Positions 3,200-64,000 of a stretch of DNA of 64,000 nt are shown here, in pieces. The position numbers and the translations under genes are program-made. Numbering within the stretch: the stretch's first letter is position 1; each line of letters starts with the position of its first letter. Origin of the DNA: Eukaryota sp. TZLM1-RC (lineage: Eukaryota > Protista > Metamonada: BaSk clade); assembly GCA_040285825.1 (NCBI GenBank), contig JAUPSS010000001.1:3720001-3784000 (forward strand), written 5' to 3'. The notes beneath the pieces were generated by a model. That model searched no databases and had not been told where the DNA came from. It saw nothing but the letters and a program-made list of their open reading frames with translations.

Positions 3200-5463
3200 A
3201 TTTGTCCATTTTTGTGACAACAAAACTTTTTTTCAACAATCTTCTTACGTTAAAAATTAAAGTCCCTTTTGAGATGACCAGTGCTCGCTTAATTGCCCTT
3301 AAAAAAAGTCAATCCAAAATCCGTCCAATTGCAATTGGAGAATCTTTTTCAAGAATTCTTGCGTCTCTTGTTTTCAATAGAATTGGAAAAAAAGCCAAGG
3401 AATTTTTCAGTCCGTTTCAATTTGGAATCAAGACAATTGATGGTGCTTCTTCTGCTGCTCTTTCGTCGGATGTGTTTTTTAATTCTAGTGATTCTAATTA
3501 CATCTTCAATTTAGATTTTAAGAATGCTTTCAATTCTGTATCTCGTTCTTCCATTTTACCTTTGCTGCAAAAGCATTTTCCTGAAGTTGAGCCTTTTTTT
3601 CTATTCATTTTATGGAAAATCATCCACATTGGTCTATGAAAATTTTGACCTGCTTTCGTCTTCAGGTGTTAAACAAGGTGATCCACTTGGTCCTTTTTTC
3701 TTTTGTCTGGCAATTCATCCATTAATGTGCGAATTGAAAGAAAAGTTCCCAGAAATAGATATTGTAGCATATATGGATGACATTTCTGTAATTGCTCCTA
3801 TTACAATTCTGAAACAAATAGCAACTTTTATTCAACAGCGTTATGAAGATATTGGTCTCTCATTGAATATCTCCAAATGTTTGATTATTGGCCATGAACC
3901 AATTGATTTTTTCATTAATGATGTCAATGTCCCCTTTATCAATTATGATCAGTCTGGTTTTCGTTTTTTGGGTTGTTATCTCGGAAATATTGATGAAGTC
4001 AAAAGCCAACTTTCGACTCTGTTGACTCAATTTGGAAATGAATTAGAATCAATAGAAAATTTAAATATTGAGAAACATTTGAAATTCTTTTTCCTCAAAA
4101 TCTGTTATTCTGGAAAATTTACTCATATTTTGAGATCAACATCACCATCAATTTCCTTGGAGTTCTGTCGCATTTTTAATGAACAAAGAACTAATTTTTA
4201 GCAAAATTATTGGAAATTGATGCATCTCAGTTACGAAGCCACATTTTTGTGGTACAAATTTTGGTGGTGTTGATTTTCATAAGTCAAGCTACCTTTGTAA
4301 AGCTGCTTTTATTGGAGGTGGAAAGAATTTTATTTATGAATTTGTGAATCGTTTTCCTGAAAAAATTCATCTCATTGAAAATTGTGGCAGCTCCTATCTT
4401 ATTTCTTTGCAACAGGAATTGAAACTCTTTCACCCAATATTTGGGCTAAATGTTTCCCCTCTGATATTGTGGAACTTCCTTCAAGAAGCTTGCTCTCCTT
4501 ACCATTGACTTTTGCAAAATTGCAGAAAAAATTTTGAAAGTTTTAGAAAACTTGGATTATATTGTACGTCTTAGCTTGGCTAAGGAAAAAAAATCCCGTT
4601 TTTGCAAACTTTTTGATTGATCTTGAAGACAGTTGCTCAAGTTGCTTAATCTCCCAAATTCCCAACATTTACGGCCTTCTACTTAATGATCACCAATGGA
4701 CCACTGCAATGAGATTGAGATGTTTTCTATGGCCTTGTTCATTGCCAAATGATTTAATTTGTCGCTGCAAGAGTGTTGTTACGCTTTCCCATATTTTTAA
4801 ACTGTAAGTATTTCATAACTTATCGCTCACTTGTTCATGACTCAGTTCGTGATCAATTATATGCCATGTGCAAAAAGTTTCAATATAGAGGCATTTATTG
4901 AGCCACTAGTACGTAAGCTGTCTTCAGATCAAACTGATGATTCCTTTGGTAAAAGAAGGGCAGATTTAGTAGCTCCAGGGATCGATGGTGTTCTCAATGT
5001 TGTAGACGTTGTCTCAGTGGATGTTTGCAAAAATTCTGCTGCTCGTTTAGTGTATTCCGCTGACTCGCCGTTATCTAACGCCGAAAAAAAGAAGATAAAA
5101 AAATATGAAGAACCTTTGGCACAGTTAGGTAGAGTGGAACATGTGAAATATCAGTTTGTGCCGTTTGCAATTTCTCTTTTTGGCAATATTGGACCTTCAG
5201 GCTTGCACTTTTTGGAAAATTTTAAAAAAGTGTTACTGAATAGGTCTGGTAAAACATTGAACTCCACTTTCTGGTTAAATAGAATTGTTTTTGCATTTTC
5301 AAGTCTATTCCAACAATGATTTCAAAGGCACTTTTAGCTATTGGTGTAGAATATGAACGTAATGCTGTGAGTAGGTTCAGTAATAGTGACGCTTGTTTGG
5401 AGGATATTGAATTCTAGATGGTTATTTTTATCTCAATAAATATTCCAGTTTTTAAAAAAAAAA
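3200..5463 (+). mobile_element. 5'-truncated CRE/SLACS-like non-LTR retrotransposon (family B), frameshifted
   Basis: IRPIAIGE, DFKNAFNS, GVKQGDPLGP and YMDD RT motifs; CRC..H..C knuckle; RRADL..VVDV..AEKKKIKKY RLE; AATAAA and A-tail at ~5435-5463. Confidence 0.92.
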
Positions 5464-18079: not shown

Positions 18080-20564
18080 TTTTTACAAAATTTTAATTTT
18101 ATTCAAAACCTATAAATCAACATCTAAAAAATCCATTTCTCCCAGAACAAAAACACTAGATGCAACTCTCTCATAGTGAGATCCAAGAGAAAGCAAAGCA
18201 TCAGAAACCATCTTCAACATCCCCTTAAAAATAGAAAACACAATTCTATTTTGCCAAAACAATCTGTCGAAATAAATTAATAAATTAATTAATTAGTTAA
18301 TAAATTAGTTCTTCTCTTTACAATCATTTCAAAATCTGCCAAAAAACGTAAAACAGTTGGTGAAAGTGAACCAAAAAGGGAAAATACAAATGGATACAAA
18401 TTGTATTTTGCATGCTGTAGACTGGCCAATTTGGACAAAGGTTCATTGTATTTTTTGAGTTTGAAATTTTCAGCATTTGAAAGAGGATTATGAATTTCAG
18501 AATTAACAAGCCTTTCATTTGAGGCATTACAAGGATCAACAGACATTACATCCAATAAAATGAAACTTCCATCTAATCCAGGTAATATAACATCACCTCT
18601 ATTATTCTTATGAAAATCATCTTCAGCATCAAACAGATTTGACAACAGAGGTTCCAAGAAGGATTCAATTCTATGAGATTTGCACATACAATATAACTGG
18701 TCTCTTACAGCATCATGAACCTTGCTTCTAAAAGTAATAAAATGTTTACAATTTAACAAATGAGTAGTTGTAATTTCTCGAGAACATTTACAAATTAAAT
18801 TATGAGGTAACTTATCAGGCCAGATAAAGGAACGAAATCTCATATTCAGAGTCCAAGCAGAATCGGTTAAGAGAGTACCATAAACTTGTGGAATTGTTGT
18901 TACTAAGGCAGAAGAAGTACTGTCACACATATCTTGTAAAAGATTTGCAAAAGCGGGATTCTTTTTCTTGGCCAAGCCAAGTCTAACATCAAAATCCAAG
19001 CTTTCAAAAATCTTTGACAATTTTTGTTGAAGTTTTTTACAGCAAAACTGAAAATTAAAAAGAGATCGGTTTGGAATTTCTTGAATTGATTGAGGAAAAC
19101 ATTTGGTCCAAATTTGTGGCGGTAATTTTTCAAGTTCACAAGATAACTCATACAAATAGGGACTACAATTGGGGACTAACAGATGCGAATCATCAGGAAA
19201 TCTACGAGAAAATTCATAAATAAAATTTTTGCCACCACCCAAGAATGCTGATTGACACAAAATTGAAGACTTAGTAAAACCAATACCACCCAAATTTGGT
19301 GAAGAAAATAAATGGCTTTTCAACATTCCTGGTTCTACATCCAATAAATCAGCAAGAAATTCTGTTCTCAATGAATTAAAAGAACGACAAAAATCTAATG
19401 CTATGGAAGGAGCACAAGATCTCAAAATGTGGGTTATTCTCCCAGTGTAGCAAATTTTAAGCATGAAAAATTTAATATGCTTTTCTATATCTAAAGAAGA
19501 AATTGAATCAAGTTCAATTTTCATTTTTTCCAAAATAACTTGCAATTCATTCTGAATTTGAGGCACGTTTCCTCACCAACAACCAAGGAACTTAAAAGCA
19601 TCACTACTATAATTAGTAAAAGGGACAATAGAATCGTTTATCACGAGGTCTTGAGCAGAAGAGCCAATCAGAAGACAGTTGCTGGCATTAAGATGAAGCC
19701 CAATATCTTCATAAGAATCGGCAATTTCTTGAGCAACCAATTCTAGTAAATCAAATGAACCAATTAAGGGTATATCATCCATATAAGCAACTATTTTTAT
19801 AGAAGGGTATTTTTGCTTAATGATATTTAAAGTTTTGTGAATAGCTGAACAAAACAATAATGGGCCTAAAGGAGCACCTTGCTTCACACCAGAAGATGAT
19901 TTAAGACCAAATGAATTAAAAATTAAATCTTATTCTTTCCCATAAAAATGATAGAAAAAACTCGATTGGTCAGGAAAATCAGATTTAATAACTTCAAAAA
20001 TTGCTTCTCGCTTTACAGAATTAAAAAAGGTATCAGAGGCAATAGCAGCAACAGAAGCACCATCAATTGTTTTGATTCCAAATTGATGAGGATTCAAAAC
20101 AGTAGAAGCTTTGTCTTTGACACGATCGAAGACAATTGATGCCAGCAAACGAAAAAGAGATTCACCAACAGCAATTGGGCGTATTCCATCAGCTTTGATT
20201 CCGTTTCCAGGCTTTACTAAAGCAATCAGACGTGCAGTGAGTAATTCAAATGGAGGATTAACTTTCAGAACAATTAATTGTTGAAAATAATGGGCTAGAT
20301 CATCAGCAATTTCGGGAGCACTGGAACACGTTATTTTTAAGAGATCAAAAGAAATTCCAGATGGTCCTGCTGCTTTCCCCTTTGGTAATTCTTGAATAGC
20401 TTTGAGAAGTTCAATTGCAGTAATAGGATATTTCAAACCAAAAAGGACACACATCAGGCTTGCTGCACTTGAAATTTTCTCGAGGATGCAACTTTTGAAG
20501 TTTCTCAAGGGTATCAGAGTTTACATCAGCCAAAGAAGAGGAAAACAAGGACTGCTTTGCGGCA
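18080..20564 (-). mobile_element. CRE/SLACS-like non-LTR retrotransposon (family A), defective
   Basis: KAAGPSG, IRPIAVGE, YMDD, knuckle and RGDVILP..LDV..K.KKY RLE; highly similar to 49120-51600. Confidence 0.93.
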
Positions 20565-24000: not shown

Positions 24001-27000
24001 ATTGGTGGACAATGAACCGAAATCTATTGTTATACTCTGTAGGCTGGCAGTAGAAGGAGAGATGTTATTAAAAACTTGGTTGTCATCACCCATTTGGTTA
24101 GGGATAGGGTTAGGGTTAGGGTTATGTGACGTCATCGTTGCGACAAGACGAACACTTGGATCTAGTGCTAATCCATCAATTCTCCTATTAGTTATCAAAG
24201 AGCACACCATCCCAAAATGCTCACTGGCATTGATATCATCCAAGAAAAGTATTGGAAAAGCGTGGGACTCATCTGGAAGTGGTTGAGGGATCGCTACTCC
24301 GGATAAACCACAGTTGTCGGCTTGTGTATTGGAACGATCAACATGGTATCGGTCTGATTGATCACGGGCGAGATGGTTGATTTCATTAATTGTTTCAAAA
24401 AGAACACTGACGGGCGTGTGTGCAGTGAACGAAATTTGTCTAAAAAGATCATCAATACGATCATTCAATAAAATAGAAGCAAAATGAGTGAAAAAAGATG
24501 TCTTACCGACCCCACTGGCTCCCTTTATAATAACAGGAAGGTTATACTTTAACTTCATCAACACAAAGAATGTCTTAACAAAAACGGCCTCTGTCAATAC
24601 AAAGTTTGATACACTGTCCATTATTTTCTGAGAGAGGAAACGGGGCAAATCCGCAAAGGAAACAATTTCTTCTAATCTTTCCATTTCGGTGCTGGGATAT
24701 TGAATTTTTATTTGGGAGTAAAACATCTGCAATTGATATGACAATGTGGTGATAATTGATGGAGGGATAAACAAATACGGATCACCTCTGCAATTGGTCA
24801 TGAAAAATAGGGGACTTTCAAAATGATGTGGTAAAGAATTGAGAAAAACCAAATGTCTGCAACTTCCCAACAGCATGAGTCGCAGTTGTTTCTGCAAATC
24901 AATGATAACATCACTAGTTAAACCAAGATAACACTCCAAATTTTCAGTTTTGTAAAACTCGCAAATCTCAAATCGAGAAATTTGAGAAACAAAAACACAA
25001 GCCAAATCAGACAACTTTTTATAAGAGATCCTTGAAGAATCTATGGAAGCAAACCCAGGAACTTCAATTGTAAAGAGACAATGTAAAGAGTTGACATGTT
25101 CGCAAAATGGCATATCAAAATAAGTAACCAAATATTGTCTCGCCTTGTCCAGAGTATATGATAGGTTCATTGAATCGTTGGAAAAAGGACACGCATCTAC
25201 ATCATGATATACGAGTTCTTTTTTAGAGTTCCATTTGTCTGGATCAACTGATTTACACAAAACTTCTGCCCAAAAGACACCATCGAATAAGTCCCACTGA
25301 CAGGGGCTAGGGATTTCCAAATATATTGTGGCATCGGAAAGCAAAGTGGTACCATTGATACGAATTCCACCTAAATAACTTAAAGAAAAAAGAATACACA
25401 AAAGATTGTAGAAGTCTTTCCGCACTGGTAATTGATCACTATTCCGAGTGTACAGATCTGGATTCCATTCTCCTTTCAAAACGTCTAGGGGTTTGTTGAG
25501 GTCTATATGAATAGCATGCTTGTTGCTTCGATTAAGATATTGCATCTTGATAATAGTATCCTCAATAGAAATCGAACCAGACAACATAACAGAATTATCA
25601 CCACACTTTTCTTTGGCACGGGATGTCTTCCCATTCCCTGGGTTCTGGGAAAACAAAATCTCTGAAATCTTGGATTGGTAGCTATCAAAAATAGGAGGGA
25701 CCGTTAGTTTTTGACCATTTAATTTCATGGTTTCAGAGGTGGTTATAATAAACAATTGAATGTTGGTGAATTCCGATTCTGTCAGAGCATTTAAATAATC
25801 TTTTGCCGAGAAAGAGAGGTATTCGGGACCTACAAGTATTCCACATTTAGTAGCACATCCAGCAATGAACGCTCTGATAGAATCAATGGAAGTTTCCTCT
25901 GAGCAAAGTAGAAAAGTACTAATTGATGGTGTGACATTCGCAAAAGAAGCCACGTGGAGAGCATCAATGAATAAAGAAGAAACAGACTCACTCTTGATTA
26001 TAGAAATGATTTGATCAGGACCTGATACAAGGCCATGATTTGCCTTACCAATATTCAATCCTGTTGAAAATTCTTCCAACCTGCCAATCAAGTTATCCAC
26101 CTCAGGTCCTTCTAGAGGAGGGTATTGTAAATTACATTCAGAATTGAAATCAAGGGGAGGGAGCTTGGAATTAATTACATTGAACTTTTCAATGTTTTTT
26201 CCAATGAGATAATCACGTAAATCTGCACCACTTAATCCAGCACATTCAATAGCCAACTGGCAACGACCAACTAGACTACACCACCTCTTGAGCAAGGTCT
26301 TTTGGCTCTCCACAGCACTCTGAAGATGAGTCAAGTCTCCTAATTCAGCAATCTCGATAATCCATAATCCAGATTCGAAAATGTATCCATTGTCTACTAA
26401 AGATCTGAGTGTTGAAAAGAGTTCAGTAACCAGTGTGTAGAGGTGGATGAAATGATGAAATGAAGTGTTGTTGGAATAAAGATCATCTTCTGTACCTGCA
26501 GCCGAGTGACCATATTTTACAATAATATTAGATGAAACCACTGAAAATGCCTTTGGATTGATGTAAACTCCTCCTTGAGGAATTCTTAAGGAAACTTCAA
26601 AATGAAAAAGGTCAAGCTCTACTTCAGCACCTACTAACTGACTTCCAACGATAAGCGAAACCAATTGTTCAGTTTCATTGAAGGAAGCAGACATAAGCTC
26701 CTCTACTGAATCTGCGCAACCCACTACTGTAGAGAACAGATCAGCAAATTCCCAAATGATGGATTGCTGGGAAATGCCCTTGTCGGAAGCATAAGTTTGT
26801 AATTCATGGAAAAATTCAGTCAACGTGAGTGGTAATTGTTCAACAAAAAAAGGAAATAAAACAGTTTTGCTCAGAGATTCATCATCTTTGAACTGTTGCA
26901 ATAGAAAATTTCTAGTTTTCACAGAGGAAAATGACAAACAAGCTGTGCCTGCATTGAGAAAAGCATCAACTTCTTCAGACGTCATTAGACGCATGTGTTC

Positions 27001-30850: not shown

Positions 30851-33685
30851 ATGTCCTTTCCATCTAAAAAACGTAGTAAGTGGGATGTTGGGGCTCCTAA
30901 ATCTTCAACTTCAAAACTTGAACAACTTCTTATCCTCAGATTTTCTCAATCTGAACTCAACAAACCTTGGGTTGACGAAGAACTCGATATCATCCTCCCC
31001 TCCGTGGATGATGGCTACGAGACTCTTATACCACCTGAACAATACTACCATCCTAGAGTAAGAGAACCATCGCCTGAACCAGAACATCGTCCTGTGCAAC
31101 CTGTTCTCTCTACTGCTATCCTAGGTCTTCCACCTATTCACCCAGATGAAGTTCAATACTTTGAAGGAGCTCTTGATGGTTTAGACTCTCAAGGAAATGA
31201 GATTTCAGACCCTACAGCATCACCTGATGACGTGGCAACACGTAGAGTCAAGCGGATTCTTTTGTATTTGAGATATGGTTCCACGTGGCAACGCAAACGT
31301 AATCTAAAACTATTATATGACTACATTCTATCAAAATCAATAGGACCAAAATCATTTTTTGATTCCTTCATTCCTTTATTTTCTATTTCTAATTTAAATA
31401 ATATAGATATTTTACACATGCTCCGTTTAATTGATGGTGTATCCCATTACTTCAAAGAACTCATCCGTCCCTATACCAAAACCTTAATCACTACCATCAG
31501 CTCTTACCTCACTAGTGAAGATAGATCTCTTAGGATGTCTACCAATACTGTGGTTGGGACTTTGGCAATGTTTTCTGGAGTTACTACCGTTATTGATAGT
31601 GTAAAAGAGTACATCACTAGTGAAGATGGTCATTTAAGAGTGGTTGCGGCTTCTGTTTTAGCTGTCAGTGGCACAACAGTCGGGGTTGCCAGTTTAATAC
31701 CCTTTTTAAGGGCAGCCAGTCAAGCAAATTCAACAGAAGCACGTCATACAGCTATGAAAACCGTTGAAAAAATTGCCCAATCTTTGTCATTTTCAGTTCT
31801 CCCTCATTTGGATTCCCTCTTGGACGTCATTGGACCCTGTGTGCTCAACGAATCAGAACATAGAGTATTGAATTCAGGAGTAATTGCAATGGCGCAACTA
31901 GCTGAAAGTGTCAGTCCTTTTGGCGGAGATTTGTTTAAAAAATACATTACAGTGATTAAGAGCGAGATAAAACGATGTGGAGGTAGACTATTGAGTTCTT
32001 TTTTGAGGCTTTCTGGTGCAATTTTGCATTTGTTGAAGGGAGCGGAAGCCTTGTCTTTTGCAGCAAGCATCACTGGAAGAATACTAGACGAAGTTGGGAC
32101 TAATGACGAGCTGTTGAAGAAAACGTGCATGATTAGTGTGCGACAGATTGTGACGACTGATGACGTGTCTAGTGAGTTTGTCCGTCGTGAGTTGTTGCCT
32201 GAGCTCTTTCCGAAAATTTGGACACGTCGCACAATATATGACAAGCGATTATCCAAATTATTGGTGGAAACCTCTACAGCTTTTGCTATCAAACTCGGTT
32301 CTGTTCCTATTTTAAAATACATGGCTGATTACCTCCATGACGAGCTTTCTCCATTCAGGACTGTAGCTCTAGAAGTCACGTCTAACGTACTTTCCTTATA
32401 CGGAAGTCATGACGTTTCGTCACGTTTAGAAGAAGAGTTGATTGATGGGTTGTTGTATACTTTGGTTGAACATGACGGAGAAGATGTTTTTATTGTTGTT
32501 AAGCACTTTGGACAGGCCCTGAGCTCTTTTGGGACCAATATTTCACGATATTTGTCCAATTTTTCAAGAATTTTGATTGATCTCATGTCACACAGAAGCT
32601 CTCGACTTCGATCACTATCTGCAAAGGTTCTTTCGACAACAGCTAACGTTTTTGTTATCAATCAATCAATCCGTGACCTTCAACGACTTTCTCTGGTTTT
32701 CTTTGAATCACTTGGTGAAGAGTTTCCTGACGTCCTGGCATCTGTCCTCTCAGCTTGTAGGTCTTGCCTTGTTGCATTGGAAGACCGTATCGAACCACCA
32801 GCTGGGGAGTTTGTACTGAAGCTCTCTCCTATTTTACGTAACAAGCATGACGACGTGCAAGAGCAGGTTACCTTGTTCATTGACACTCTAGCAGGCATTT
32901 CTCCTGATTGTGCCCCTCCCAAAGAATGGCTGCGGTTAGTTTTTGAATTAATCGAGAACTTATCCTCAACGCGACGGTCCGTTCGACGTGCAGCCATCAG
33001 TGCAATTGGACAAATTTCAAAAGCAATAGGTCCTTCAGATGTTCTCCTAACCTTACTAAACAACTTACGTGTTCAAGAACGACAGAACCGAATGGCAACG
33101 ACCATGGCAATTGCCGTCATTGCTGATAATTGCGGTCCTTTCACCGTGTTGCCGGCCTTATTTGTTGAATATAAAACTCCTTCACTCAATATCCAAAACG
33201 GTGTTTTGAAATCTTTATCATTCATTTGTGAGTTTATGTCATCTAAATGCAGAGATTACGTCTATTCTATCGTTCCATTACTCGAGGATGCACTTACTGA
33301 TGCTGATCTAGTTCATCGCCAGACTGCATGTACTGTGGTTAAGCATTTGTCTTATGGTGTGCATGGCCATGGAGCGGAAGATGCACTTTTGCATTTGCTT
33401 AATTTGATTTGGCCAAATATACTAGAACCTTCGATTCCAATGATGACTGCATTTGTAGAGGCTGTTGAAGCTTTAAGAGTTGGTTTAGGACCTTGTCATT
33501 TACTCCAGTATGTGCTACAAGGGTTATTCCACGCTGCAAAGAAGGTACGAGAGCGATATTGGAGAATATTTAATATTATTAGGATTGGTTCTGAAGAGGC
33601 TTTGACCGCTTTCTACCCTGATCTGGTTGACGATGACAAGTATGGCAATGTTTATAGCAGAAGTGATTTGGACTTGGTATTGTAG
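30851..33685 (+). CDS. SF3B1: Splicing factor 3B subunit 1 (U2 snRNP HEAT protein), N-terminally reduced
   Basis: RSKWD, DEELD..LP..GY, LLNNLRVQERQNR, CGPFTVLPAL, NIQNGVLKSLSF, DLVHRQTA, QGLFH. Confidence 0.95.
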   Translation: MSFPSKKRSKWDVGAPKSSTSKLEQLLILRFSQSELNKPWVDEELDIILPSVDDGYETLIPPEQYYHPRVREPSPEPEHRPVQPVLSTAILGLPPIHPDEVQYFEGALDGLDSQGNEISDPTASPDDVATRRVKRILLYLRYGSTWQRKRNLKLLYDYILSKSIGPKSFFDSFIPLFSISNLNNIDILHMLRLIDGVSHYFKELIRPYTKTLITTISSYLTSEDRSLRMSTNTVVGTLAMFSGVTTVIDSVKEYITSEDGHLRVVAASVLAVSGTTVGVASLIPFLRAASQANSTEARHTAMKTVEKIAQSLSFSVLPHLDSLLDVIGPCVLNESEHRVLNSGVIAMAQLAESVSPFGGDLFKKYITVIKSEIKRCGGRLLSSFLRLSGAILHLLKGAEALSFAASITGRILDEVGTNDELLKKTCMISVRQIVTTDDVSSEFVRRELLPELFPKIWTRRTIYDKRLSKLLVETSTAFAIKLGSVPILKYMADYLHDELSPFRTVALEVTSNVLSLYGSHDVSSRLEEELIDGLLYTLVEHDGEDVFIVVKHFGQALSSFGTNISRYLSNFSRILIDLMSHRSSRLRSLSAKVLSTTANVFVINQSIRDLQRLSLVFFESLGEEFPDVLASVLSACRSCLVALEDRIEPPAGEFVLKLSPILRNKHDDVQEQVTLFIDTLAGISPDCAPPKEWLRLVFELIENLSSTRRSVRRAAISAIGQISKAIGPSDVLLTLLNNLRVQERQNRMATTMAIAVIADNCGPFTVLPALFVEYKTPSLNIQNGVLKSLSFICEFMSSKCRDYVYSIVPLLEDALTDADLVHRQTACTVVKHLSYGVHGHGAEDALLHLLNLIWPNILEPSIPMMTAFVEAVEALRVGLGPCHLLQYVLQGLFHAAKKVRERYWRIFNIIRIGSEEALTAFYPDLVDDDKYGNVYSRSDLDLVL

Positions 33686-49119: not shown

Positions 49120-51600
49120 AAATTGTGTTTACGTGGTCGTTATGGTGCCGCAAAGCAGTCCTTGTTTTCCTCTTCTTTGGCTGATGCAAACTCTGATACC
49201 CTTGAAAAACTTCAAAAATTGCATCCTCGAGAAAATTTCAAGTGCAGCAAGCCTGATGTGTGTCCTTTTTAGATTGAAAATCCTGTTACTGCAATTGAAG
49301 TACTTAAAATTATTCAAAAATTACCAAAGGGGAAAGCAGCAGGCCCATCTGGAATTTCTTTTGATCTCTTAAAAATAGCGTGTTCCAGTGCTCCCGAAAT
49401 TGCTGATGGTCTAGCCCATTATTTTCAACAATTAATTGTTTTGAAAGTTAATCCTCCATTTGAATTACTCACTGCACGTCTGATTGCTTTAGTAAAGCCT
49501 GGAAACGGAATCAAAGCTGATGGAATACGCCCAATTGCTGTTGGTGAATCTCTTTCTCGTTTGCTGGATCAATTGTCTTCGATCGTGTCAAAGACAAAGC
49601 TTCTACATTTTTGAATCCTCATCAATTTGGAATCACAACAATTGATGGTGCTTCTGTTGCTGCTATTGCCTCTCATACCTTTTTTAATTCTGTAAAGCGA
49701 GAAGCAATTTTTGATGTTATTAAATCTGATTTTCCTGAGCTATCGAGTTTTTTTTTTACCATTTTTATGGGAAAGAATAAGATTTAATTTTTAATTCATT
49801 TGGTCTGAAATCATCTTCTGGTGTGAAGCAAGGTGCTCCTTTAGGCCCATTATTGTTTTGTTCAGCTATTCACAAAACTTTAAATATCATTAAGCAAAAA
49901 TACCCTTCCATAAAAATAGTTGCTTATATGGATGATATACCCTTAATTGGTTCATTTGATTTACTAGAATTGGTTGCTCAAGAAATTGCCGATTCTTATG
50001 AAAATATTGGGCTTCATCATAATGCCAGCAAATGTCTTCTGATTGGCTCTTCTGCTCAAGACCTCGTGATAAACGATTCTATTGTCACTTTTACTAATTA
50101 TAGTAGTGATGCTTTTAAGTTCCTTGGTTGTTGGTGAGGAAACGTGCCTCAAATTCAGAATGAATTGCAAGTTACTTTGGAAAAAATGAAAATTGAACTT
50201 GATTCAATTTCTTCTTTAGATATAGAAAAGCATATTAAATTTTTCATGCTTAAAATTTGCTACACTGGGAGAATAACCCACATTTTGAGATCTTGTGCTC
50301 CTTCCACAGCATCAGATTTTTGTCGTTCATTTAATTCATTGAGAACAGAATGTTTTGCTGATTTATTGGATGTGGAACCAGGAATGTTGAAAAGTCAATT
50401 ATTTTCCTCAGCAAATTTGGGTGGTATTGGATTTACTAAATCTTCAATTTTGTGTCAATCAGCATTCTTGGGTGGTGGCAAAAATTTTATTTATGAATTT
50501 TCTCGTAGATTTCCTGATGATTCTCATTTGTTAGTCCCCAATTGCAGTCATTATTTGCATGAGTTATCTTTTGAACTTGAAAAATTGCCGCCACAAATTT
50601 GGACCAAATGTTTTCCTCAATCAATTCAAGAAATTCCAAACCGATCTCTTTTTAATTTACAGTTTTGCTGTAAAAAGCTTCAACAAAAATTGTCAAAGAT
50701 TTTTGAAAGCTTGGATTTTGATGTTAGACTTGGCTTGGCCAAGAAAAAGGATCCCGCTTTTGCAAATCTTTTACAAGATATGTGTGACAGTACTTCTTCT
50801 GCCTTAGTAACAACAATTCCACAGGTTTATGGTACTCTCTTAACCGATTCTGCTTGGACTCTGAATATGAGATTTTGTTCGTTTATCTGGCCTGATAATT
50901 TACCTCAAAATTGAATTTGTAAATGTTCTCGAGAAATTACTACTCATTTGTTAAATTGTAAACATTTTATTACTTTTAGAAGCAAGGTTCATGATGCTGT
51001 AAGAGACCAGTTATATTGTATGTGTAAATCTCATAGAATTGAATCCTTCTTGGAACCTCTATTGTCAAATCAGTTTGATACTGAAGATGATTTTCATAAG
51101 AATAATAGAGGTGATGTTATATTACCTGGATTAGATGGAAGTTTCATTTTAGTGGATGTAATGTCTGTTGATCCTTGTAATGCCTCAAATGAAAGGCTAG
51201 TTAATTCTGAAATTCATAATCCCCTTTCAAATGCTGAAAATTTTAAATTCAAAAAATACAATGAACCTTTGTCCAAATTGGCCAGTCTACAGCATGCAAA
51301 ATACAATTTGTATCCATTTGTATTTTCCCTTTTTTGTTCACTTTCACCAACTGCTTTACGTTTTTTTGGATGATTTTGAAATGATTGCAAAGAGAAGAAC
51401 TGGGAGAAATTTCAACAAATTGTTTTAGCAAAATAGAATTGTGTTTTCTATTTTTTAGGGGATGTTGAAGATGGTTTCTGATGCTTTGCTTTCTCTTGGA
51501 TCTCACTATGAGAGAGTTGCATCTAGTGTTTTTGTTCTGGGAGAGATGGATTGTTAAGATGTTGATTTATAGGTTTTGTATAAAATTAAATAAAAAAATA
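49120..51600 (+). mobile_element. CRE/SLACS-like non-LTR retrotransposon (family A), defective
   Basis: Same RT, knuckle and RLE motifs as 18080-20564; A-rich tail at ~51580-51600. Confidence 0.93.
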
Positions 51601-55647: not shown

Positions 55648-56904
55648 TCATGGATTTAAAAAAGTTTTCTTTAAAATATTCAATCTTTTTTCCAATCTAT
55701 TTTGATAAATTACAGCCTCTATAGCTTTCCTAAATTTTTGACAAACCAATGATCGATACTTTAGTTTTTCAGCCATTAAACTGCTCTTTCGGAGTTCAAA
55801 ACATTGAGATAAGGGCAAGACCTTTCCATCTACTACCTTAGTGGCAGTCGGAAACCTCACGTCATTTGATTCACAATTTGATTGGTTGATTGGCTCACAA
55901 ATTGAGGGTGGAGTTTTGACCTGTTCTGTTTTCTTGATTGAACGACTTCCATTAGTTCTTGATCCCTTACTGATTGACTGACTTCCAATAGTTTTTAACC
56001 CTCTACTAACTGACTGACTTCCTTTTAGTTTTTCTGCTGCTTTGACAACACAATTGAACGTGTCTCCCGGTACACACGAACCAGAGAGATGACTCTTAAC
56101 AATGCAAGTACCGAGATCAACAGAAAGAGTAGAAGTGGCTGTGCCAAGAACACAAGGTGTAAAAGTAAGGATGATGGTACAAGGAAGGGTGCCAAGGTTA
56201 GGGTTAGGGTTAGGGTTAGGGTTAGGGTTAGGGTTAGGGTTAGGGTTAGGGTTAGGGTTAGGGTTAGGGTTAGGGTTAGGGTTAGAAGATTCAGATAATG
56301 TAAGGTCCTTGTCAACGTTGGGTTCCATCATCTTGATTGATTGACTTCCATTCGTTGTTGACTGCCTTGTGATTGATTGAGCTTGAAAAGAAATGGCTGA
56401 GGAGAACCCTACATCTTGGTCTATAATGGTTTGGAAATGTTCAACTTCTAGGCTTTGTGAATGTTTATCTAATTCAAAAGACAGAGAGTGTGAGGATCCC
56501 AATGGTACCTTACCAAAGTCAATGTACTTGGGAAGAGAGATGGTAGAAGGGACAGAGGAGAGAATTACTGGAATCTTGATAACATACGGACTTGATTGAG
56601 AGTTAGATTGAGAGTTAGGAGCGTATTTGGTAAAAGCATGGAGTGTAATCATTGTGGAAAAGTGGGAGAGGTCGGGTGGAAAAGAGGGTTTGACAGAGAG
56701 AGCGTATGTATTTCCGGAACAAATCCAGCTAGTGTTTCGTGATGCGAAATGTTGTTGTATTGAGAGAAATTTAGTTTGGAGAGGTAGAAGCACAAATCGA
56801 CAGGGTACATTAAAAGAGTTGGTCAGCGAAATGGTTTGTGATGTGGAGGATCCTGGTACAAAAACCAAAGAACGTGGTGAAGGTGAAGGTGGAGTGTTGG
56901 ACAT
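55648..56904 (-). CDS. CFAP221/PCDP1-like ciliary ASH/Ig-domain protein with an (NP)15 insert
   Basis: QTISLTNS..RF..LP.QT.F, P..IDFG.VPLG, TFTP..GTA, GSCVPG. Confidence 0.65.
   Translation of the reverse strand: MSNTPPSPSPRSLVFVPGSSTSQTISLTNSFNVPCRFVLLPLQTKFLSIQQHFASRNTSWICSGNTYALSVKPSFPPDLSHFSTMITLHAFTKYAPNSQSNSQSSPYVIKIPVILSSVPSTISLPKYIDFGKVPLGSSHSLSFELDKHSQSLEVEHFQTIIDQDVGFSSAISFQAQSITRQSTTNGSQSIKMMEPNVDKDLTLSESSNPNPNPNPNPNPNPNPNPNPNPNPNPNPNLGTLPCTIILTFTPCVLGTATSTLSVDLGTCIVKSHLSGSCVPGDTFNCVVKAAEKLKGSQSVSRGLKTIGSQSISKGSRTNGSRSIKKTEQVKTPPSICEPINQSNCESNDVRFPTATKVVDGKVLPLSQCFELRKSSLMAEKLKYRSLVCQKFRKAIEAVIYQNRLEKRLNILKKTFLNP
56196..56285 (+). repeat. Interstitial telomeric repeat (TTAGGG)x15
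   Basis: Perfect 90-bp hexamer array. Confidence 0.97.
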
Positions 56905-57029: not shown

Positions 57030-58985
57030 TAAAAATCAATATTCTCAAACTTCACATCTACTATTGAAAATTTACCTACAGCATTTTCTTCATAATAATT
57101 TTCCTAGTAATAACAACGACCTAGAAACAAGGCTATTCATTCCCTTAAAAATAGAAAATACAATTCTGTTTTGCCAAAAGGCTCGGTCTAATATTCTTAC
57201 AGTTTTATTTTTGGCAATAGATGAGAAATCATCCAAAAAAGATAACGCAGTTTTACCCAGGGTTCCAAATAAAGAAAAAGCAAAAGGACAAAGAATGTAT
57301 TGAGTATGTGAGTTGGAATTCAGATAATTGATTTTTTCTGTGTACTTGATAATTTTGGCTTCTTCAGCTCTACGTAAAGGTGAATTATAAGATTATGCCA
57401 ATTTTTCATTTGAGCTGTTTGATACATCAGTAGGTCTGACATCAATAATGATCATTGATCCATCAAGTCCGGGAATTAGCACATCACCACGGCTGTCACC
57501 AAAAGACAGATTCATCAACCAAATTTGAAAGCAAAGGTTCTAAAAAAGATTCGAACTTGTAAGACTTAAACATACAATAATAAGCTGATCACGAACTGCA
57601 TCATGCACTTTTTATCTAAAAGTAATGAAACGATTACAATTAAATAAATGGGTTGGAGTGACAGACTTTCCACATTTACAAATTAATCCATGAGGACGAT
57701 TATCAGGCCAAATAACAGATCGAAGACGCATAGATAAAAAAAAGCAAGGGTCATTGAGAAACAACCCATAAACTCTTGGTACTTGATTAATTAAACAAGA
57801 GGCAGAATTATCACAAACATCCAGTAAAAAATTTGGAAAAACGGGAGGTTTTTTGCTTGGCCATGCCAAGACGTACTTCATAATCCAAGCCTTCAAATAT
57901 TACTGTCAGTTTTTGTTGAAGCTTCTTCACACAATACCTTAAATTAACTAAATTTCGTGGAGGAATCTCTTCAACTGAGTCGGGAAAACATTGACACCAA
58001 ATTTATGGTGCAATTTTATTAATGGCAACACCAAGGTCATACAAATATTTGGTAGATGATGGATTAAGCAAATGAATATCTTCAGAAAAACGATTAAGAA
58101 ATTCAAAAGTAAAATTTTACCACCACCAACAAAAGCTGTCTGACACAGAATTAAAAATTTGGTAAAGCCAACACCACGAAATTGTGAAGAAGAAAACAAG
58201 TGAGCTCGAATTAGCCCAGGATTCATTTCTAATAGGGAAGCAAAGAAAGTTGCACGAAGTTGATTAAATGATCGGCAAAAATCGGAAGACAATGAAGGTG
58301 CTGTCGACCTCAATAAATGAGTAATTTTTCCGGAGTAACAAATTATTAAAATAAAAAATTTTAATATGTTAATTTCAATTTCTAATTCAGAAATTAATTG
58401 AAGCTTATTACCAAGTTTTGCAACAATTTCGCTGAGATTTTCAGTAATTTCGTCAACAGTTCCTAACCAACATCTCAGAAAACGAAAAGCTTCTTGTGAA
58501 TAATTTCTAAAAGGAATTTTACAATTATTAATTTTAAACTCTTTGAAATCATTACCAATTAATAAACATTTTTTTTAGGATTCAAGTGAAGACCAATGAT
58601 TTCGTATTTTTCAGCAATTTCATTTGAAGCTTTTTGGACAACATCAAAAGGACCGATAAGATGTGATCCATGTAACCCACAATTTTGAGAGATGGGTATT
58701 TTTCATTAATTGCTTTTAAAGATTCCTGGATTGTTATGCAAAATAATAATGGGCCCAAAGGGTCCCCTTGTTTTACACCAGATGAAGACTTGAGAGAAAA
58801 AACATCATATACTAATTCACTTGGTTTACCGTAAAACAAGTAGAAATAACTTGATAGTTCAGTGAAATGTTTTTGAATTATTTCGTAAATTGCTTTTCCT
58901 TTTACACTGTTGAAAGCATTGCAGAAATCTAAATTGAAAATAATGTTGTTTCCTTTGGAGTTAAAGAACATGTTCTTTTAACTTT
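57030..58985 (-). mobile_element. Degenerate CRE/SLACS-like retrotransposon (family E)
   Basis: DFCNAFNS, GVKQGDPLGP, CKC..H..C and RGDVLIP motifs. Confidence 0.9.
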
Positions 58986-59905: not shown

Positions 59906-62689
59906 TCAACTAAGTCCTAAATTCGAGATCTTATCTCCCAAATCATCCTTTTCATCATCGACATCAATCACGTCATCAATCACATTTGATTGGCACTCAT
60001 CTTCATCCAAATCAGAATCAGAGAGATCCAGCTTGATTAACCTTCTTTTTGGTTTCTTTTCCACTTTTTTAAATGACATATCATCATCAGAATTGACAAA
60101 TTCAACATCGTCATCACCACAAACAAAGCCATCTAGATCAGTATCATCATCAGTATCATCATAAACGTCATCATCGCTCAAAAACCCACGTGCCCTGTCG
60201 AGAGAAAAATCAGCAAGTCTACCCTCGACCTTCACTGTGGATAGGGGAGTATTTATGTTTCTAAATTTAGTAACAGCTGGAGTAAGCTCAATCCCATTCC
60301 GTCGAAGAGGAGTTTCCTGTCCAATTTCGACTGTCACCGTATGGTTTAAAACCTTTTCATCATTTTGATTATGATTTGATTGATTTTCTATTTTAACCAA
60401 ATGATCATGACGAACAACTCCAACTGGCCCATATTCGAGAAGCTTATTTACATATAAATCGTTTTCAAAATCGTTAGGCATTCTGTCAATAAATCGCTCA
60501 AGCATTGCTGCTTGATCATAATGCTCAACAGGGACGACTATGCGACTGATCTCATCTTCGTCAATCAAATTTGATTGGCACTTGTCTAATGATGTATTAA
60601 CAGTTCTTTTTAAAATTCTTGCGTAGTGTGCCTCTTCAGCTACTGATACAATTCTATACGCAACAACTTCATTTTGTTGCCCTATACGATAAACTCTTCC
60701 TAGAGTTAATTAAACAACAGAAAGAGAAAACACACCAATTGCTTGAATATCTTCACTTGGAGTTAAACCAATATCAGCGATAATCACACGATCTGCCTGA
60801 ACCAAGGTAAGCCCTTCACTGCCACAAGCAGTTGTTAGTACTAAAACTGAAGGTCTGTGTCTATTACAGCTTGGTATGAAATGTTTAAGAACCTTGTGTC
60901 GTTGTTTCTTTGAGAGACATCCTTCATAACTATAAGCAGGAATTGACAAGACTTGTAACAAAAACAAGACCACATCAATAGTAATGAGTCTTTGAACGAA
61001 AACTAAAACAGAGTGATTGTCATTAATTAAATCAGAGATCAATAAGATGATGGCTTTCAACTTTGGTGAATGATCAAGAAGTGCTTGGAATAATTCTTCT
61101 TTTGTTAGAGGTTTTGGAGGAGATTTTGAAGAGTCGCTTTGATGAAAATCATTATTTGATTGATTGACCTGTAGTTCATCATCAACTGATGGGTGACTAA
61201 CAGATTGATTAATATCATCTTCAGTTGGTTTGTTGTAGGAATCATTTATAAGATTTTGAGATTCTTTATAACTCTCAGAGCAACAATCATCAAAAATTGA
61301 TTGATCATCATCACCTGAATGATCTATTGATTGGTTGACAATATCAACAAGACTCTCACGAATTTCCTTAACCGCTGACGAACCTTCTACGTCATCATTT
61401 TGACCTTCATCCAGATCAATACCCTCTTGATTGTCTAGTTTCCGTTCCATCTCATCAATATCAACTTTACACACGTTTCTACAAAATTGCTTAAAATCAA
61501 AGCGGTCCCCATTTTCCAAAGTCCCTACAAAATCCAGAGATTGCAGTTCACTAGTGTAATCATCCCCTTTAACCGTATCAGCAATCTTAACCAAGAAAGG
61601 CGGGAGAGTCGTAATTAACCTTGAATCAGAAACTCTTTTAATCTCAGCACGTTGGTTGTAAAAATTAAACAAATGACATTGAGTTTTAGATAGTGGTACA
61701 AATACAGTATATTCTTTTTTTGGAGGTAAAGAAAGCAAGTCAGAAGACCTCTGGATGAAAATAGGATCAACAAGAGTAACAAGCTCGTTAGTGAGCTGTA
61801 TACACGTGTCAATTTCTTCTGGGCTTGCGGATTTTTCGTGCCCTATTTTGATTTTTTTAGCATATTCTTGATTAAAAACAGTTTCATTAGTAAATAATGT
61901 AGGATCTATAAATGAGATTAACCTGTAGAATTGAATAGGATCACTTTTCATTGGTGTAGCTGATAATAACAACCTAGGGTTAGGGTTGGGGTAAATATAC
62001 CTTTAATAAATACTATTGATTTTAGTCACAATACCTTTGATTAAAACAAGACTTAACACCACAAACCTGAAATAACCAACCATTAGACGTTCAAAAGCTT
62101 GCCTTGTTTTGCTCTTTGGGTTTAAAATGTGGTGTGCTTCGTCTACCACTAATACGTCAAACTCATCCTCTTCCAGCTTGTCTATGAGAGAACGGACCAT
62201 ACCATGGGTGATGAGGAGAATACCACCGTATTGCAGAACATCTGAGATGAGTCTGAATTTTCCCTGCGTGGTGCGGGATGACGTGATCTTGTGAACAGCT
62301 GGGTTGGAACCAGAATAGGAAAGCCAACGGGTGAGTTCCTTGTCCCATGAGTTAATGTGTTCCTCGTTGCGTACTGCGATGAGGATAGACTGGAGAGGAT
62401 TGTGTTTGAGCATAAGAGCCAGGGAAACGATTGCTTGTGCTGTTTTTCCTGGAGTTAATGTGAGGAAAAGCAAACCTAGTCCCATCTCATCGGCAAGGAG
62501 GAAGCCATTCCGATCTCCTAGATAAGAACCAAATATTTTGAGGACACCATGAATCTGAAAGGAATGAAGCTTGGATAGAAGGGTTTCATTTAGGATGGAT
62601 GTATCGATGGTGACTTCAGTTGGCTCAATGGTTGATTCATCTGAAAGATCGTGTGAAGTAGGAGTGTTGGAAGGTGAAGGCCCTTCCAT
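59906..62689 (-). CDS. SNF2-family helicase (Rad54/ERCC6-like); introns 62449-62475, 61974-62066 and 60700-60735
   Basis: Splicing restores LADEMGLGKT, FRLLLSATP and QAIGRVYRIGQ; DEAH, SPKL and GLTL..ADRVI are also present. Confidence 0.9.
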
Positions 62690-63361: not shown

Positions 63362-64000
63362 ATGAGATATGGGTTTGGTGTATGCTTCAAAAGTTGTATT
63401 CACAAAAAATTGCATGCATTTTATTCAATGCCAAACTTCGTCTTCAACAGTGATACCTTACAACGGGTCAAATCCAGGATCCAACCAATCTCACCATCAG
63501 TTCCAATGACAGTAGAGGAAGGTGCCTATTACTATGAGGAAACTGCTAATGACTTGGTGGAGGCTTTGGCTCAAGGAAGTCTTCACAGTCCACAACACTT
63601 GGTTACAAAAGTATCACCCAGTGAAGGCACTGTACAAGACCTTCAACAGTGCATGGAAGAAAAAACATCTATTGAAGAAAAGCTGAATAGATGTAATGAA
63701 CAAGTTGCTTCTCTTAGAAATGACTTGAAGAATCTCGAAATCAAGCATCACAAAACCATTGAGAATATACAAACAGAACTTCTGCGTCAAACTGAATCAA
63801 TTCCACATCTACATGAAGAAATAGACGTACTGAAAGATGAAAACAAGGAGCTACGTGAACATATAGATGTACTGAAAGATGAAAACAAGGAGCTACGTGA
63901 ACATATAGATGTACTGAAAGATGAAAACAAGGAGCTACGTGAACATATCCAACAACAAGATGACCATATAAGAGAACTGCAAAACGACAACAAGCATCTA
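63362..64000 (+). CDS. Partial coiled-coil protein running off the window end
   Basis: Open frame to the window end with heptad-rich IDVLKDENKELREH repeats; start uncertain. Confidence 0.55.
   Translation, partial: MRYGFGVCFKSCIHKKLHAFYSMPNFVFNSDTLQRVKSRIQPISPSVPMTVEEGAYYYEETANDLVEALAQGSLHSPQHLVTKVSPSEGTVQDLQQCMEEKTSIEEKLNRCNEQVASLRNDLKNLEIKHHKTIENIQTELLRQTESIPHLHEEIDVLKDENKELREHIDVLKDENKELREHIDVLKDENKELREHIQQQDDHIRELQNDNKHL
63821..63946 (+). repeat. 42-bp tandem repeat x3 (coding)
   Basis: ATAGA(C/T)GTACTGAAAGATGAAAACAAGGAGCTACGTGAACAT. Confidence 0.95.

Follow-up and report, generated by a model that had tools for sequence, protein, structure and literature searches.

In a RAD54B-like SNF2 helicase gene (DNA repair) of Skoliomonas litria, a flagellate from a soda lake, a gap of 93 nt in the coding sequence (minus strand, 62066-61974) consists of three abutting GT-AG units, 32, 34 and 27 nt long and joined as AG/GT. 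This three-unit anatomy is a real feature and lies well beyond chance. Judged from its sequence, the gap probably represents three independent and complete U2-type mini-introns, which the spliceosome would remove one at a time. Positions refer to the window, i.e. the whole 64,000-nt stretch of DNA that was analysed, unless another locus is named; the source organism, Eukaryota sp. TZLM1-RC, is S. litria, a free-living metamonad (PMC11603281). By an exact match of its SF3B1 protein, the window starts at position 3,720,001 of JAUPSS010000001.1 (assembly GCA_040285825.1).

Host gene and anatomy of the 93-nt gap

Once 27, 93 and 36 nt are removed, the RAD54B-like gene encodes a product of ~875 aa. 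Its best matches are the orthologs of Skoliomonas sp. GEM-RC (59% identity) and TZLM3-RCL (RCL, 56% identity), followed by RAD54B-like proteins with ~30% identity. In an exon-by-exon search the upstream exon aligns gap-free with residues 59-182 of the RCL ortholog and the alignment of the downstream exon begins at residue 184, with the split Arg codon corresponding to residue 183. The Pfam SNF2-rel_dom profile stands at position 151 before the gap and at 157 after it, and in the NCBI product P9112_014620 the junction has become VGYF-R-LLLSATP, with the 93 nt precisely removed. The S. litria annotation was RNA-guided (HISAT2, GeneMark-ET, AUGUSTUS and PASA with RNA-seq guidance and manual curation; PMC11316075) and is compatible with a single 93-nt intron. 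S. litria is available in culture, and the RNA-seq reads of its genome project belong to BioProject PRJNA949547. On the sequence evidence, the colinearity with two intronless sister orthologs together with the NCBI model thus requires that exactly 93 nt be removed from the transcript.

The gene has three intron positions and neither sister has any; most genes of the loci examined are intronless. NCBI represents it as two overlapping products of 611 aa (partial) and 669 aa, the second of these starting from a Met that lies shortly after the 93-nt gap.

All four junctions of the 93-nt insert, outer and inner, read AGGT. Each unit carries a branch A at -7 (62041, 62007 and 61980 for units 1, 2 and 3). 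Scored against the single-intron model described below, the donors reach 8.6, 3.5 and 4.8 bits and the acceptors 6.2, 4.8 and 12.3 bits, respectively. Unit 2 is the weakest of the three, its sum of 8.3 bits being close to that of the lowest single introns, while the acceptor of unit 3 is the best of all. Unit 3 ends in 18 nt of telomere-type CCCTAA repeats (61991-61974), which are the source of its branch motif.

When the eight combinations of kept and dropped units were translated, the frame stayed open only with all three dropped or with unit 3 alone kept, which adds 9 aa, the length of unit 3 being a multiple of three and free of stops; all remaining retained subsets cause a frameshift or a stop. 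The preliminary description had claimed three complete GT-AG mini-introns with zero-length exons, a middle unit that cannot be coding and the restoration of SNF2 motif III upon removal of all three. Units, joints and coordinates match this account exactly, retention of the middle unit shifts the frame or adds a stop, and the spliced product reads ...VGYF-R-LLLSATP. Its proposal of an isoform retaining unit 3 is borne out as far as the open frame with nine additional residues is concerned; the isoform itself is unsupported, these residues being absent from both orthologs.

Table 1. Features of the RAD54B-like gene and of the 93-nt gap (window positions)
Feature	Position	Strand	Remarks
RAD54B-like SNF2 helicase gene, NCBI P9112_014619/014620	59906..62689	-	Pfam SNF2-rel_dom and Helicase_C
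Ordinary intron A, 27 nt	62449..62475	-	In motif I (GLG/KT); removed in P9112_014620
Upstream exon	62067..62448	-	3' end ...TTTCAG, split Arg codon
Insert of 93 nt with 5-bp direct repeat AGGTT	61971..62068	-	Outer junctions 62068-62064 / 61975-61971
Unit 1, 32 nt	62035..62066	-	Donor GTTTGT (consensus), branch motif TTAAT, acceptor AAG
Zero-length exon 1, AG/GT joint of units 1 and 2	62034..62035	-	From sequence
Unit 2, 34 nt	62001..62034	-	Donor GTATTG, branch motif TTTAT, acceptor AAG
Zero-length exon 2, AG/GT joint of units 2 and 3	62000..62001	-	From sequence
Unit 3, 27 nt	61974..62000	-	Donor GTATAT, branch motif CTAAC, acceptor TAG
Weak hairpin of A-U and G-U pairs, predicted for intron nt 22-65	62002..62045	-	Covers branch 1, donor 2, branch 2 and acceptor 2
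Downstream exon	60736..61973	-	Starts GTTG; encodes SNF2 motif III LLLSATP onward
Ordinary intron C, 36 nt	60700..60735	-	Removed in P9112_014619

The units compared with single introns

To describe ordinary introns, further S. litria loci were searched by subtracting the product length from the gene span. In this small sample, covering ~1% of the S. litria genome, ~20 single introns were recovered in single-copy genes. All have 26-36 nt, one candidate of 42 nt aside, and bear out the narrow intron size assumed in the preliminary description. The 15 introns used for training measure 27-36 nt (median 31) and follow the consensus GT-W-T-G-T at the donor and Y-T-n-A-Y-n-n-n-A-G at the acceptor, with the branch A at -7 in 13 of them and at -8 in two. 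Four later single introns have 26-32 nt and a branch at -7 to -9, and five introns from the sister species (28-33 nt) agree with the S. litria model.

The units of the gap conform to this model. T at -9, A at -7 and, directly after the A, a pyrimidine (-6) are found in all three units and in 13 of the 15 training introns. In leave-one-out scoring, single introns range from 1.1 to 8.6 bits for donors and from 1.4 to 11.9 bits for acceptors, and the four internal splice sites of the gap score inside this range. The strongest sites are the two outer ones (8.6 and 12.3 bits). The internal sites are weaker, donors 2 and 3 being without the G at +5 and acceptors 1 and 2 reading AAG. Such variants occur in single introns: GTATTG, the donor hexamer of unit 2, is also the donor of a single intron that interrupts the HCKAG-LGRTG motif of Cdc14, a single intron of S28e has the donor GTATAG, and single introns of L36e and Clp1 have AAG acceptors. 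Against a consensus extended by the AG in front of the donor, the internal donors agree at 6-8 of nine positions and single introns at 4-7 of nine.

We then shuffled the interior of the 93 nt with the outer sites fixed. Any split into three units at AGGT arose in 0.12% of mononucleotide and 1.2% of dinucleotide shuffles, and the observed internal splice-site score was reached in none of 300,000 mononucleotide and none of 60,000 dinucleotide shuffles, figures that are to be read with the selection of this locus for its three-unit appearance in mind. A scan of 294 kb of S. litria DNA gave this one three-unit chain only, at three thresholds, and none in shuffles; the strictest threshold was picked post hoc, after the scores had been seen, with the two laxer ones serving as control. 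No second chain was found in ~335 kb of S. litria DNA. For joints of two units, 7.5 are expected by chance at the laxest threshold. As such joints are common by chance, the result rests on the triple and on the scores.

Several longer gaps proved to be of another kind. Intron totals of 59, 61, 62, 88 and 98 nt per gene, considered as further chains, each resolve into separate single introns, and annotated gaps of 45, 46, 79 and 251 nt were rejected as long introns as they sit in multi-copy retroelement models. Many fragments of a multi-copy reverse-transcriptase element are called as genes in the window (3524-5319, 18289-20508, 50144-50914 and 57948-58971) and in loci L007-L019. Their annotated 'introns' of 22-251 nt look like frameshift-bridging artefacts, which would skew intron-length tables made from annotation. 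A naive motif-distance scan of the window gave no length peak.

Some observations concern the limits of the intron model. A candidate plain intron of 42 nt without internal AGGT lies in a single-copy gene of unknown function (L007 14774-15364, minus strand, gene nt 344-385); if real, it sets the upper size limit above 36 nt. The gene of a membrane protein (L019 718-1594, plus strand) has three separate mini-introns of 32, 26 and 30 nt, two of which have the branch motif at -9 and not at -7, so that this distance is not strictly fixed. The first Cdc14 intron appears to be GT...AT, not GT...AG (L012 1770-3127, minus strand, gene nt 38-68, JAUPSS010000008.1). It has 31 nt and a branch motif at -7, the length of the NCBI product needs it removed, and its removal restores IK-DRLYF; it reflects either a non-canonical acceptor set by the branch distance or a base-call error. 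SF3B1 (window 30851-33685, plus strand) has 944 aa and a short N-terminal region, compared with ~1150-1350 aa in most matches, and is possibly connected with the tiny introns and the short distance from branch to acceptor. An Rfam search found no snRNA in the window.

Removal of the 93 nt

The probable removal of the gap unit by unit would follow from a spliceosome that handles introns of ~26-36 nt with the branch point beside the acceptor. With AG/GT at all joints, each excision would regenerate valid sites for the neighbouring units, so that any order of removal would yield the same mRNA. Abutting units are unlikely to be engaged simultaneously, given the footprint of the spliceosome on flanking sequence. 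Six intermediates would be possible, lacking 32, 34, 27, 66, 61 or 59 nt; five of these had been named before, validly, while the 59-nt form, from which units 1 and 3 are removed, was missing from that list. All six would be distinguishable by size or sequence. Of the 221 parses that restore the reading frame, none that is made up solely of introns of up to 40 nt and leaves the conserved protein scores higher than the three-unit parse. Parses with microexons, in which coding bases are kept between introns, were rejected for their poor sites and for added residues that both orthologs lack.

Several observations count against stepwise removal, the candidate 42-nt intron among them. Inner sites weaker than the outer ones are the pattern expected of decaying inner sites. 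In addition, a weak hairpin is predicted (-4.1 kcal/mol at 37 °C, -8.6 at 21 °C) in which the first and second branch points, donor 2 and acceptor 2 have unpaired probabilities of 0.04-0.2 at 37 °C, and which would mask the inner sites at equilibrium. A specially stable hairpin was rejected, the fold of the whole intron being no better than that of shuffles (z +0.67).

The main alternative is removal of all 93 nt in one step, from donor 1 to acceptor 3, the two strong sites. An internal stem-loop would bring these as close together as in a normal intron, and the internal sites would be insertion relics or minor cryptic sites. This seems unlikely. In its favour, the outer sites have the top scores, the single 93-nt parse tops all 221, and the NCBI model fits one 93-nt intron. 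Related metamonads are moreover proposed to compact introns to 35-45 nt (PMC6679479), and with the outer sites held open a long hairpin is predicted that leaves ~24 nt single-stranded. The energy of this fold, however, is that of shuffles (-9.7 compared with -9.7 ± 2.6 kcal/mol), and its span lies in the lowest 9% of shuffles, which is not significant. One-step removal also gives no reason for three units of suitable length, every one of them with a branch motif at -7.

Mixed or regulated use of the sites, in which some units are removed singly and others paired (66+27 or 32+61), appears quite improbable. Incomplete removal would then give non-productive transcripts or the form with nine additional residues and would tune the level of the helicase. 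The weakness of unit 2, at 8.3 bits summed, is in line with this, as is 66+27 being the best multi-step parse. The NCBI product starting at the Met after the gap could reflect incomplete splicing, a weak hint, but may be a plain annotation split. Neither the orthologs, which do not share the nine residues, nor the acceptor of unit 3 fit this reading, and the sample of ~20 introns holds no single intron of 61-66 nt. It is highly improbable that an insertion has disrupted the gene or that the 93 nt are an assembly artefact: several genes of the GEM-RC sister assembly do have frameshift-like splits, but here every exon has an open frame and follows the 888-aa RCL ortholog colinearly, the RNA-guided annotation excises the 93 nt precisely, and the insert, which is not repetitive, carries three complete sets of splice signals.

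The split genes of GEM-RC encode SF3B1, clathrin heavy chain and the SNF2 ortholog, each present as 2-3 frameshift-split gene calls (L003 8937-11797 and 14689-19095; L004 10001-12377). These splits are most likely assembly indels.

The reading we prefer, removal in three separate steps, includes a probable hard ceiling on intron length in S. litria. More tentatively, this ceiling may lie at ~36-40 nt, with introns growing only by the addition of complete mini-introns, one after another, at AG/GT junctions through break repair, partly with telomeric filler, and with recursive splicing being obligate and free in its order, an extension that we regard with some doubt. If it is true, most S. litria introns above ~45 nt should come in multiples of a ~30-nt monomer, with zero-length exons as a by-product of intron gain.

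Origin of the chain and comparison with known systems

The DNA of both sisters (GEM-RC and RCL) has no 93-nt intron and no AGGT at that codon. In the rRNA tree, TZLM1-RC is closer to GEM-RC than to RCL, which is the first to branch off (PMC11603281). With both sisters intronless, this branching order makes a single gain on the way to S. litria more parsimonious than two losses. The same argument holds for the ordinary introns A and C, neither of which occurs in the DNA of the two sisters.

The sequence bears possible traces of this gain. Unit 2 is flanked by an 8-bp direct repeat, AAAGGTAT (62038-62031 and 62004-61997, minus strand). Given AGGT at both joints, its chance is ~0.03 by a hand estimate from the single-intron matrices, and as an insertion trace it is only suggestive. 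The whole insert is flanked by a 5-bp repeat, while those of single introns measure 0-4 bp (n = 15) and AG before plus GT after is found in none of the 15. Similarity among the units or with the flanking exons is not significant (p 0.21-0.97), and a tandem duplication of the flanking exon or of one unit was rejected on these grounds. Introner-type copies of the units were not found in ~290 kb (~1% of the genome) beyond words of chance length.

The chain was thus probably made by repeated insertion at one site, as we infer, including the order of events, from the 8-bp repeat around unit 2, the 5-bp repeat around the whole, the telomere-type unit 3 and the lack of relation among units. Successive pieces of unrelated filler would have entered one AGGT site in the S. 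litria lineage, each insertion duplicating a few target bases through the repair of a staggered break. The filler of unit 3 would be telomere-type sequence, and unit 2 would have come last, into the joint between units 1 and 3. An insertion would have survived only when it was itself spliceable as a complete mini-intron. The length and the branch motif of unit 2 lie outside the 8-bp repeat and are therefore not a by-product of the duplication. Were one-step removal of long introns easy, an insertion would presumably have had no need of its own length and branch motif. New introns of Daphnia likewise have direct repeats of 4-12 bp and arise by repeated insertion at one site (PMC4202315). The two cases share unrelated filler, short junction repeats and reinsertion at one site; secondary inserts in Daphnia lengthen the intron, whereas in S. 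litria each piece is a complete intron.

Zero-nucleotide recursive splicing at ratchet points is known from Drosophila and mammals, mostly in introns above 10 kb and described as proceeding 5' to 3' (review PMC13149111; Duff et al., 10.1101/006163); wider intron sizes are given in PMC10156609 (Hoppe et al.). Ratchet points and the 93-nt gap have in common an acceptor directly abutting a donor as AG/GT. Removal at ratchet points is stepwise and traceless in the mRNA, with several sites possible per intron, and the same is proposed for the gap. With its two AG/GT joints, host-like internal sites with a branch A and a product free of internal sequence, the gap has the anatomy of recursive splicing. 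The typical setting is a long intron with a site shared across species, while the gap has 93 nt and is absent from two sisters. It also differs from ratchet points in being fully tiled by minimal units with their own branch points, in being lineage-specific and in being described from sequence. The chain is likely driven by a length ceiling, unlike ratchet points, where the driver is great length.

In Schizosaccharomyces pombe two instances of zero-length exons have been described, one of them in a 336-nt intron of SPNCRNA.445 (10.1101/226894). Like S. litria, this is a microbe with short introns in which an acceptor adjoins a donor inside one intron. SPNCRNA.445, however, is a snoRNA host with one internal site that is conserved across species and was shown by spliceosome profiling, whereas the S. 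litria chain has two internal sites and units of 27-34 nt, lies in a protein-coding gene, is missing from the sisters and is known as sequence. Stwintrons and complex intervening sequences are known from fungi (PMC9024468, PMC7138796). A stwintron has one intron lodged within a donor, branch or acceptor element of another, and the order of removal is forced. A stwintron was rejected here, with donor, branch and acceptor uninterrupted in each unit; the S. litria units abut, and their order of removal would be free in principle.

Compaction by stem-loops has been proposed for the long introns of diplomonads and parabasalids, namely Giardia, Spironucleus and Trichomonas (PMC6679479). These metamonads resemble S. 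litria in their uniform short introns with the branch point fused to the acceptor, and in that a long intron calls for a special solution. In contrast to such compaction, the hairpin predicted in S. litria is at shuffle level and the internal splice signals exceed chance by far. A literature search of incomplete coverage returned no paper on Skoliomonas introns, their recursive splicing or chains of tiny protist introns.

If true, three-step splicing within 93 nt would be the most compact case found in the literature searched. Recursive splicing is usually viewed as the way in which animals cope with very long introns; the S. litria case would show the opposite driver, a spliceosome unable to reach beyond ~35 nt. 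The locus seems to record the birth of ratchet sites through repeated gain at one AG/GT with target duplication, and it bears on two open questions, the source of new introns and the source of ratchet points. To our knowledge, zero-length exons are beyond what gene finders can represent, and such chains would for this reason be invisible in annotations.

Further repeats were seen elsewhere in the window. Interstitial CCCTAA runs lie within ORFs at ~56196-56285 and ~24107-24124 (both minus strand), the 90-nt run encoding a poly-Asn-Pro tract. A tandem repeat of ~42 nt with about three copies (~63820-63960) lies inside a called plus-strand gene.
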